Below, piece after piece: positions 20,717 to 22,553 of a DNA stretch of 47,950 nt. How positions within the stretch are numbered: the stretch's first letter is position 1; every line of letters starts with the position of its first letter. A program made the position numbers and the translations under genes. Source of the DNA: Fonticula alba ATCC 38817 (lineage: Eukaryota > Protista > Nucleariida); NCBI GenBank assembly GCA_000388065.2, contig KB932209.1; one strand, given 5' to 3'. The notes below the pieces were generated by a model. That model was not told the DNA's origin and ran no database searches. It was given only the letters and a program-made list of their open reading frames with translations.

Positions 20717-20788
20717 TGCTCATTGGGTGGATCGAACACCCGACCTCCAGTTTACTAGACTGGCGCTCTACCACTGAGCTAAACGAGC
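20717..20788 (-). tRNA. tRNA-Thr(AGT), second cistron of a Gly-Thr pair
   Basis: GCTCGTTTAGCTCAGTGGTAGAGCGCCAGTCTAGTAAACTGGAGGTCGGGTGTTCGATCCACCCAATGAGCA, identical to 29180-29251; T6 terminator downstream. Confidence 0.95.
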
Positions 20789-20822
20789 GGGTCTGCGTCG
20801 ACCGGGAATCGAACCCGGGTCT

Positions 20823-21278
20823 TGTAACCTTCGCCGCCCAAATCCCAGAATTGGTCACGGGTTGTCACGTGACCACATCTGAGAAGTCGGATCCCCGGCT
20901 CTCCTCTCCTCTTGGGGAGAGCCGCGCCTCCGTGTACAGACCTTCGCCCCGCCCTGCCGCCTCCTCCCTCGGCGCCCAGGGAAGAGGGACAAGGTGCTCC
21001 TTCTCCCATGCGCCTAACCCCTATATAAGGGACGGCATCCGCGCCCTCTTTCCCATGTACGGCTACCCTAGAAAGGATAGTCATTGCCTCCTTGGCCTGG
21101 CTTTCTCCCCCCCAAGCCAGTAGTCTCTGATGTAAATACTTTTGCTTCCCCCAACAAGACCGCGCGCGCTTTATTGTCATCGCTTGCCTTCTTGTACCTC
21201 TCGAGACGAAATGCTTTCTTCCGAGGCGTGATCTCCATATCGGAGAACAAGCCTCGGTGAATCAGTCCGAGCGTTTCA
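20823..21278 (+). mobile_element. Solo LTR (456 bp) of an LTR retrotransposon
   Basis: Begins TGTAAC and ends GTTTCA (TG...CA, imperfect 6-bp terminal inverted repeat). Flanked by a GGTCT direct repeat at 20818-20822 and 21279-21283, which occurs once in the intact tRNA-Gly. Internal TATATAA at 21022-21028; no ORF of note. Confidence 0.85.
21022..21028 (+). promoter_or_regulatory. TATA box within the solo LTR (putative U3 promoter)
   Basis: TATATAA in otherwise GC-rich sequence, about 200 bp into the LTR. Confidence 0.55.
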
Positions 21279-22553
21279 GGTCTACCGCGTGGCAGGCGGC
21301 AATTCTACCACTAAACCATCGACGCTTGCCAAAGGGGTCCCTCCCTGACGTTAAATGTCACCGGCGAATCCCTTGTGATTGCGGGACAAAAAGTGCACAG
21401 CTCAAGATGCGTTGCGGCCTGTTGTTCGCCAGAAAACAAGGGGCGCCCTGTGTGCCTGCTGGGTCAAACCCGGTGGAGAGGTGTGTTTCTCCTGTCTTTT
21501 CTATTCTTATTCATTTCTTCTCCCCACCTTCGACGTGTACCCGCTCGCGGGTTGGAACAAACCCACGGAGATCGCACTGAATCGGGCATTTCTCTCGGTC
21601 TGTTCCTGCTCTCCTCCCGGGACATGGGTCCCCGCCCGGTCCGAAAGGAGCGAGGTTGTCCGGCTCCTTCCGGCAGGTGTCCTCTCCCCAGAGCTGCGAA
21701 TCCTCATACGCCGGCTTCCATCCCTCAGGGAGGAGTTGCCTGCCCGGTCCCTATAGCCGAGGCCACCGTTGATGCTTGTGTTGCTCCTGCTGTTGTCGAT
21801 TCTGCTGCAGTTGCTCCTTTCGGCGAGGAATCCAACAGGGGAGGACGCCGAGGAGGGCGCTCGCCCGGCAGCCGACATGGGTGCCCTTTTCGCCGACAGG
21901 AGGGTGCCCCGAAGGGGAGGGGCCTTCTTACCTCGATGTTCAGCCTGCACTCCGACCGGTTGGCGCTCTGCATGCTCTTCTTGGCGGATGAGGCGCGTGC
22001 CGGGGTGCAAGGGGCTTGGAAAATGTCGGTCCTCATCAGTTCGCAGGTGGCCGGGATGTGCCCCCCGACTCGGCATTGTAGGAAGTGACTCGCCACGCTG
22101 TGGGCATGTGTTGCGGGGCAGAGGTTTACCCCGGGGGCGTCGGGCTTGGGGGCCGCCCTTCACCCGGAGCTTGCACACACCTGACACGCGCCTAGTGGAG
22201 GCGCAGGAGGAGGACCGAAAGGGACAATGGCATCAACAGGGTGCCAGCTGGGAGTGCCTCATCGGGGCCGATCAAGCATCCGGGGAAAATGCCGCGGGGA
22301 CATTGGCCGCTCACCGGGTGCATGGATGGAAGCCCACACAGTCTGCGCCCACGGGCGCGAAGATGGGGATTCATGAATAGCCATAACCCGATTGCACTGG
22401 CGCGCTCATGCGCCTGGATGGCAGATGTGGGGGTGGGTTGGTTATGGGGGGAGGGTCGTGGCCGACGTGTGTGCCCCTCCCCCGGGAGGGGCAGGAACCG
22501 GGGAGCGGTGGGCCGGAAAAAGAAGCGGGCACGCGGCCGCAAAAAGGAAGATG

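Follow-up and report, generated by a model that had tools for sequence, protein, structure and literature searches.

Introduction

Integration beside transfer RNA (tRNA) genes is the textbook case of how mobile elements survive in compact genomes, and the examples described so far are all from budding and fission yeasts and dictyostelid amoebae. Among the described elements that integrate in this way, the closest analogue of the one reported here is Tj1 of Schizosaccharomyces japonicus, a self-priming retrotransposon with its domains in the Ty3/gypsy order that inserts upstream of tRNA genes with a single fixed orientation, between -5 and -11 and with its direction matching that of the tRNA (PMC4600332). 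Ty3 of Saccharomyces cerevisiae shares this domain order and targets RNA polymerase III (Pol III) genes very precisely: it inserts in both orientations, downstream of TFIIIB, with the cut 1-4 bp from the start site (PMC8632968, PMC5911963); both Ty3 and Tj1 cut between the TATA box and the start site (PMC5911963, PMC4600332). DGLT-A of Dictyostelium, a single-frame gypsy-type element in the compact genome of an aggregative amoeba, inserts 13-33 bp upstream of tRNA coding regions, mostly at ~15 bp and in either orientation (PMC5006619, PMC6101501). Here we describe an insertion in a 47,950-nucleotide (nt) stretch of DNA from the aggregative amoeba Fonticula alba (C9:13855-61804 of a 31.3-Mb assembly of 214 contigs; hereafter the window), where a solo long terminal repeat (LTR) of an element that we call family A lies upstream of a tRNA-Thr gene and splits a tRNA-Gly gene. 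The species assignment agrees with the HSP70 gene on contig C5 of this assembly, whose translation is identical to XP_009495687.1 of F. alba.

The published review table of Pol III-targeting elements lists yeasts and Dictyostelium only (PMC5911963), a survey of compact genomes covers the dictyostelids (PMC5006619), and a 2026 preprint on F. alba reports 0.36% repeats and does not mention tRNA genes (bioRxiv 10.64898/2026.06.24.734286). We found no description of tRNA-targeting elements, or of this family, in full-text searches on Fonticula, in agreement with an initial annotation of the window, made from its letters alone, which knew of no such family in this group. We put at roughly 85% the probability that the insert is the solo LTR of a young LTR retrotransposon family of F. 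alba with the Ty3/gypsy domain order, one that primes its own reverse transcription and whose integration is aimed ~30-34 bp upstream of tRNA genes.

Results

The insertion locus

The letters of window positions 20500-21600 and 28950-29450 were inspected and the two regions aligned, and tRNA genes were located with ARAGORN. The gene whose upstream slot was targeted is tRNA-Thr(AGT), on the minus strand at 20714-20788. Next to it, the 3' fragment of a tRNA-Gly(GCC) gene (nt 43-71, with the B box; 20794-20822, minus strand) is separated from the 5' fragment (nt 1-47; 21279-21325, minus strand) by a plus-strand element of 456 bp, TGTAACC...GTTTCA (20823-21278), flanked by two perfect copies of a 5-bp target-site duplication (TSD), GGTCT, at 20818-20822 and 21279-21283. 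The Gly gene is interrupted after nt 47, and the duplicated bases are its nt 43-47, between the A and B boxes. An intact tandem, in which a spacer of 5 nt separates Gly(GCC) from Thr(AGT), was identified by ARAGORN and by alignment in the same window (29104-29252, plus strand) and is a paralogue that represents the empty site: its Thr is identical to the one at the insertion, and the alignment makes both junctions exact, the single mismatch falling in the spacer. The gap between the LTR and the mature 5' end of tRNA-Thr is 34 nt, with the near TSD copy at -30 to -34. The initial annotation had described the element, its duplication, the empty site and the distance in these terms, and had concluded that targeting of tRNA-Thr destroyed the Gly gene of a dicistron; our inspection of the locus leaves each of these statements standing.

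The annotation also had the LTR promoter pointing away from the tRNA, and here too the locus bears it out. The TATA box of the LTR (tatataa, LTR position 200; 21022-21028) is on the plus strand, and in the full-length copy described below the primer-binding site (PBS) follows the GTTTCA end, from which it follows that the window LTR is transcribed away from tRNA-Thr. Within the LTR we propose a U3 region at 20823-~21064, an R region at ~21065-21164 and a U5 region at 21165-21278, all on the plus strand, where the limits of R would be set by the position of a 16-nt self-primer segment, accctagaaaggatag (21065-21080, plus strand), which is complementary to the PBS of the full-length element, and by the point at which a contig from a probable RNA run stops.

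The Gly-Thr tandem was matched over Gly, the spacer and most or all of Thr at at least 10 places genome-wide, and many separate Gly(GCC) and Thr(AGT) genes are also present in the genome. Given that the split Gly gene belongs to one of at least 11 Gly-Thr tandems, its loss is cheap and should be harmless to the host. A targeting rule that is safe at single tRNA genes turns destructive at the second gene of a tandem, and the insertion suggests that this second gene assembles an initiation complex of its own.

The contigs of DNA run X4 are interrupted where repeats begin or end, and a joint that skips the LTR was rejected as a sign of polymorphism, since its source is the set of intact Gly-Thr paralogues, which are many. 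Runs X4-X11, made up of DNA runs with a second organism label (2025) and of metagenomes from soil, sediment and gut, contain half to three quarters of the sampled LTR-plus-flank words, and X4, from the second label, also carries the unique flank of the window. These matches could reflect a co-culture that contains the same strain, carry-over, or F. alba living in the environment.

Family A copies at tRNA genes

Family A loci were merged into tiles, on which ARAGORN and BLAST were run, and the distance from the LTR end to the nearest facing tRNA 5' end was measured. The LTR has 19 matching stretches at ~15 places, at least 14 of them additional to the one in the window, with copies that are whole or partial and 78-100% identical. 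Ten copies have a readable outer flank; the other matches are fragments or LTR ends that abut assembly gaps. Eight of the ten readable copies lie ~28-34 nt from the mature 5' ends of eight different tRNA genes, seven of them at 32-34 nt. The gap between the U3 end and the tRNA is 34 nt at Thr in the window and likewise at Asp (C6:39603), Val (C10:470843), Glu (C10:23420) and Leu (C5:552240), 32 nt at Arg (C1:4673720) and Pro (C47:6678), and ~28 nt at Lys (C13), where the copy is 78% identical. In all ten readable copies it is the U3 end that is nearest the tRNA, so that transcription leads away from the tRNA (two-sided sign test, p = 0.002), and in none of them does the U5 end lie near any tRNA 5' end. 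Allowing a generous 1000 tRNA genes and an interval of 17 nt at each, a random insertion would fall in the slot with p ~5e-4, and eight of ten would do so with a probability of ~1e-25. The copies are plainly not placed at random with respect to tRNA genes, and their distance and single orientation are what one would expect of the lineage-specific tRNA-targeting family that the initial annotation had proposed from the window copy.

The young LTR copies are 98.7-100% identical. Their TSDs, at seven sites, are GGTCT, CTTTT, ACCTC, ATATG, ATGAA, the 4-bp ATTC and GGTTA, the last offset by one base, so that the duplication is 5 bp at five of the seven. Because these TSDs and the flanks differ from site to site, the young copies represent independent insertion events. 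The two readable copies outside the slot are older (87-89% identity; C2:1294332 and C4:1027128) and are found 606-607 nt from tRNA-Gln and tRNA-Asn, where the gap is occupied by the LTR of a second family, B, which was inserted later and starts 33-37 nt upstream of the tRNA. The opposite order holds at C10:470843, where the inner LTR is that of A and the outer one that of B. Nesting in both orders indicates that the same slot has been used repeatedly by the two families.

Two further features of family A LTRs were observed. In the copy at C10:22858-23420, LTR positions 243-321 are doubled, 29 nt apart, with the self-primer segment included. At family A junctions the inverted LTR end, GGTTACA, beside the TSD creates an AT-rich stretch where the TATA-like box of the tRNA gene was cut, and this stretch might keep up the strength of the tRNA promoter.

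Family B, and family C as a control

The family B LTR (~567 bp, TGTAACCATAATG...GTGTTTCA) has 31 matching stretches in the genome, and at least 17 copies lie 33-43 nt upstream of tRNAs, in both orientations. Twelve have the U3 end proximal, at 33-43 nt (two at Leu, two at Ala, two at Arg, and one each at Cys, Gln, His, Asn, Glu and Val, the Val copy lying behind a later family A copy), and five have the U5 end proximal, at 34-42 nt (three at Ser, one at Lys and one at Ile). Perfect 5-bp TSDs were seen at at least seven sites (GGCGC, ACAAA, TGGAT, CCCCA, TGGCC, GCGGC and TTCGT), the last belonging to a degenerate full-length copy (C3:3259470-3264166) whose 5' LTR lies 35 nt from tRNA-His. Eleven loci where LTR copies or fragments lie off tRNAs or are cut by gaps were scanned with Rfam, which returned tRNAs only and no 5S, U6 or 7SL gene.

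A third gypsy-type element, family C (C14; L023, G000:C14:390323-395527), has an open frame of 2055 amino acids (aa), and its polyprotein is 36% identical to that of family A across reverse transcriptase (RT) to integrase. Its LTR (TGAAATGCC...GCGTTTCA) is preceded by a normal G-rich polypurine tract. None of its seven other copies has a U3 end within 100 nt of a tRNA gene; two lie ~480-550 nt from tRNAs. As family C lacks the association, tRNA adjacency is a property of the A/B lineage and not of all elements or of survival sites in general. Further gypsy-type families are present on C1, C2, C4, C10, C11 and C19.

The window holds a second LTR, an older diverged solo copy related to family B (22670-23147, minus strand; ~478 bp, ~76% identity, starting TGCAAC), whose U5 end is 34 nt upstream of tRNA-Ser(AGA) (22553-22635) and which is one of the five U5-proximal copies counted above; no TSD was recognisable at this copy. 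A tRNA-Met gene at 23324 lies 176 nt past its U3 end. Elsewhere, on G000:C1, a tRNA-Phe(GAA) gene is split, with nt 1-39 at 4670776-4670814 and nt 35-73 at 4666384-4666422, the 5-nt overlap being the target duplication around a 4.35-kb insert; this insert had no match to the A, B or C LTR queries or to the family A pol query (RT to integrase). The tRNA matches with the highest scores in the genome are on the small late contigs C211, C212 and C214, some in near-duplicate sets, and these contigs may be organellar or come from a food bacterium.

Geometry of the target site

The 60 nt upstream of 64 tRNA genes were collected from the window and the fetched tiles (loci L001-L072). AT content was 64-75% at -35 to -31, compared with a background of ~30-45%, which marks out a TATA-like, AT-rich box spanning roughly -36 to -29, where cataaata, tataatt and acaaaag are among the motifs; comparable putative TATA boxes have been marked upstream of Pol III genes in fission yeast (PMC4600332). 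When 22 occupied sites were aligned at the LTR junction, the AT peak fell at +5 to +9 (63-77%). The 5-bp TSD abuts the box directly in most family B copies and overlaps its upstream half in family A. Across family B the distance to the tRNA spans 10 nt, yet the box stands at an almost constant distance. The spacing of family A remains 32-34 nt even at the window Thr, where the slot falls inside tRNA-Gly and there is no TATA-like box, and this fits placement through the Pol III complex and not through a DNA motif. Integration at the start site, of the Ty3 type, was not seen at these loci: the cuts fall at -30 to -43, at or upstream of the TATA-like box, where distances are measured from the mature tRNA 5' end and not from the start of transcription.

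The full-length element

A full-length element was sought, and contig C42 (6502 bp) supplied it. LTR 406-456 opens the contig and LTR 1-94 closes it, each matching the window LTR at 100% identity, and its internal part is a single open frame of 2037 codons in which the first Met is codon 28. The gag region is long and contains a coiled coil; neither a zinc knuckle nor a Pfam match was found in it. Downstream, Pfam domains RVT_1 (1113-1273), RT_RNaseH (1342-1488) and Integrase_H2C2 with rve (1647-1812) were recognised, together with the protease motif LIDTGA at 896, the RT motif YVDD at 1222, and the HHCC motif and DDE core of the integrase. This arrangement of protease, RT, RNase H and integrase is the Ty3/gypsy order (Metaviridae). 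The best match of the integrase among solved structures was Ty3 (7q5b, E 4.5e-14), followed by foamy virus integrase. Homologues from outside were at most 36% identical, mostly from animals and with automatic names, none of them from Fonticula, and an exact look-up of eight element and flanking ORF sequences found none of the eight in the protein collection. The one open frame of 2037 aa suggests that family A is still alive, and the family probably still moves.

The initial annotation had raised the question of a chromodomain or another targeting domain. The integrase C terminus runs from the core through a linker to one SH3-like barrel, beginning at GDKVYV, and ends ~20 residues later. No chromodomain was found after the integrase with the Chromo profile, even at E up to 10, and the Atlas feature matches for this region were to integrase SH3-like C-terminal families only; a chromodomain at the integrase C terminus, the hallmark of the chromoviruses, is thus absent from family A. 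An AlphaFold model built on a 4-sequence alignment, weak overall (mean predicted local distance difference test score, pLDDT, 58.7), has a single small beta-barrel, mostly at pLDDT 67-87, after which ~20 aa form a disordered tail, and the other aligned Fonticula families likewise end soon after the barrel. What does set family A apart is the linker between core and barrel, which has ~30 extra residues (polyprotein aa ~1876-1950; L020:5560-6213) relative to the elements on C10 and C202 and to that on C14, which does not target tRNA genes. The linker of the degenerate family B copy is similar in length to that of family A. In Ty3 an extended linker forms a platform for TFIIIB (PMC8632968), and it is possible that the ~30-residue extension is a docking segment, which we offer as a lead only.

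In a maximum-likelihood tree of RT-RNase H, nine Fonticula copies fell on one side of a 99% branch and 60 outside hits on the other, with A and B as sisters at 99%. As several Fonticula branches are long and the references are 60 unnamed outside hits, the tree shows local relations only. It fits, and does not prove, an origin of targeting within a local Fonticula radiation.

Priming and transcript ends

The 16 nt that follow the family A 5' LTR (ctatcctttctagggt) are the exact complement of LTR 243-258 (window 21065-21080), a segment placed 43 nt beyond the point where the TATA box starts. The family B copy on C3 has a different 14-mer (ctatccttcaaggt), which complements that element's own LTR 316-329, 44 nt after its own TATA box. 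Both pairing partners have changed together between A and B, and such compensatory change supports self-priming of the Tf1/Tj1 kind, by which family A, judged from these pairings, would prime itself. In neither family is the 3' LTR preceded by a purine-rich tract, and the two share ...CACCAA followed by the TG of the LTR. A longer conserved block, ...CGATGG..TCGCT.TTCA...CACCAA, was observed before the 3' LTR in both (L020:6369-6408; C3 near 3260040).

In a probable RNA run of the source organism (X12), a 2727-nt contig runs from the element's internal 3' end into LTR 1-342 and ends at window position 21164, 26-33 nt past a TGTAAATA motif. If the run is indeed RNA, the contig end would be the poly(A) site and R would correspond to ~LTR 243-342.

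Discussion

A working model for targeting

Families A and B are a real, young, tRNA-gene-targeting lineage of LTR retrotransposons in F. alba, with a geometry of their own and probably with their own docking mode. Like the initial annotation, we infer that integration works through Pol III factors, and we further infer that the docking site is TFIIIB. The intasome would dock on the Pol III initiation complex, most likely on TFIIIB (TBP-Brf1-Bdp1) bound to the TATA-like box. TFIIIC would set TFIIIB at ~30-34 nt and TBP would settle on the best AT-rich stretch available, so that the element would integrate at the upstream edge of the box, on the face opposite to that used by Ty3 and Tj1. At the window locus a full-length copy would have landed upstream of tRNA-Thr, where the slot lies inside tRNA-Gly because Thr comes second in a Gly-Thr tandem. 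The two LTRs would later have recombined, leaving the solo LTR. A bolder reading, to which we give somewhat less than even odds, is that F. alba, on the branch sister to Fungi, evolved its own Pol III-directed integration within a local gypsy-type radiation, and that its integrase, which lacks a chromodomain and has an extended linker, docks in a locked orientation on TFIIIB's upstream face. If this is correct, Fonticula would provide a third independent model beside yeast and Dictyostelium, and the insertions would be natural footprints of TFIIIB assembly inside the first gene of a tRNA tandem.

Several observations weigh against the working model or against the figures behind it. DGLT-A binds the TFIIIC subunit Tfc4 through its RNase H and the N-terminal domain of its integrase (PMC6101501), and the family A integrase is without the chromodomain that Ty3 uses on Brf1, so that the Ty3 mechanism is not simply transferable. 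All of the copies are fixed genomic ones, with no new or polymorphic insertion seen among those of families A and B, and selection after integration may have shaped the orientation bias. A few family B copies have no adjoining tRNA or other Rfam Pol III gene. The number of tRNA genes in the genome is rough (658 first-look candidates in an Rfam scan), and the RNA status of run X12 is a tool's guess; two raw RNA runs of another label (X23 and X24) gave no reads on the stretch.

Alternative explanations

The strongest competitor accepts that targeting is real and places the tether on TFIIIC or on Pol III itself, as for DGLT-A (Tfc4) and Ty1 (AC40). Tethers of this kind are known to exist (PMC6101501, PMC7459421), the family A integrase has no chromodomain of the Ty3 kind, and a ruler based on the internal promoter would explain why the family A spacing stays near-fixed at 32-34 nt even at the box-less Thr of the tandem. 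We regard this possibility as worth keeping in view but on balance doubtful. Family B lies anywhere from 33 to 43 nt from the tRNA, yet its TSD abuts the AT-rich box in most copies, which points to the position of TBP and TFIIIB; moreover, TFIIIC itself positions TFIIIB here, and the fixed spacing of family A is also expected with docking on TFIIIB.

It could also be argued that the integrase is drawn to any TBP-bent or TATA-like DNA, including that of RNA polymerase II (Pol II) promoters, and that only insertions at tRNA genes survive because those elsewhere harm protein-coding genes. Consistent with this idea, the TSD abuts or overlaps the AT-rich box, and the genome is compact and poor in transposons, with 0.36% repeats (bioRxiv 10.64898/2026.06.24.734286). 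Nevertheless, every readable young family A copy is at a tRNA gene and none at a Pol II promoter, the site of the window copy has no TATA-like box, and family C survives away from tRNAs, which shows that other sites are tolerated. We therefore consider this explanation improbable.

Random integration, with the pattern produced by selection or by build-up in gene-poor, tRNA-rich regions, is more improbable still. The tRNA genes are clustered (ARAGORN found 10 in the window), and the two family C copies within ~480-550 nt of tRNAs might be taken as signs of such build-up, but selection cannot yield a distance spread only 3 nt wide, one orientation in ten of ten copies and repeated nesting in a single slot. 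With the chance probability of ~1e-25 for eight of ten placements, and with family C showing no tRNA adjacency, the distance distribution effectively refutes this reading. Finally, although two family B loci at tRNA-Ala (C8:27490 and C2:3902034) have near-identical flanks and may be duplicates of each other, the notion that the copies are segmental duplications of one tRNA-plus-LTR block can be set aside, as the eight family A copies adjoin eight tRNA species with different flanks on both sides, the seven young TSDs differ and the empty site is present in the window.

Comparison with known systems

The TFIIIB-docking model is best judged beside the elements with which we began. Tj1 resembles family A in domain order, self-priming, upstream placement and single orientation, a likeness drawn from its published description, but it has separate gag and pol frames where family A has one, and family A, whose transcription leads away from the tRNA, lies at -30 to -34. 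Ty3 differs more: it integrates on the downstream side of TFIIIB where family A uses the upstream edge of the box, its vestigial chromodomain and C-terminal domain contact Brf1 and TBP where family A has no chromodomain (PMC8632968, PMC5911963), and it relies on a tRNA primer and a gag-pol frameshift in place of self-priming and a single frame. Precedent for the priming comes from Tf1 of S. pombe (Tf1/sushi group), in which the partner of the PBS is not a tRNA but the 5' part of the transcript itself; Tf1, however, carries a chromodomain and targets Pol II promoters, and in family A self-priming is deduced from the sequence and from covariation between families. DGLT-A resembles family A in its single frame, its upstream placement and the way of life of its host, but it inserts in either orientation, binds Tfc4, and has a host among the Amoebozoa, whereas the host of family A belongs to the Holomycota, a different supergroup.

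Family A extends tRNA-gene targeting to the sister lineage of Fungi, in an aggregative amoeba that is poor in transposable elements, and does so with a geometry unlike the known cases, combining the upstream edge of the box, transcription away from the tRNA, an integrase without a chromodomain and self-priming. In this organism, which lacks genetics, the insertions mark the position of the Pol III initiation complex, even within a tandem of two tRNA genes. Set beside Ty3, Tj1 and DGLT-A, the family provides a further natural test of whether such targeting evolves convergently and of which Pol III surfaces an integrating element can use.

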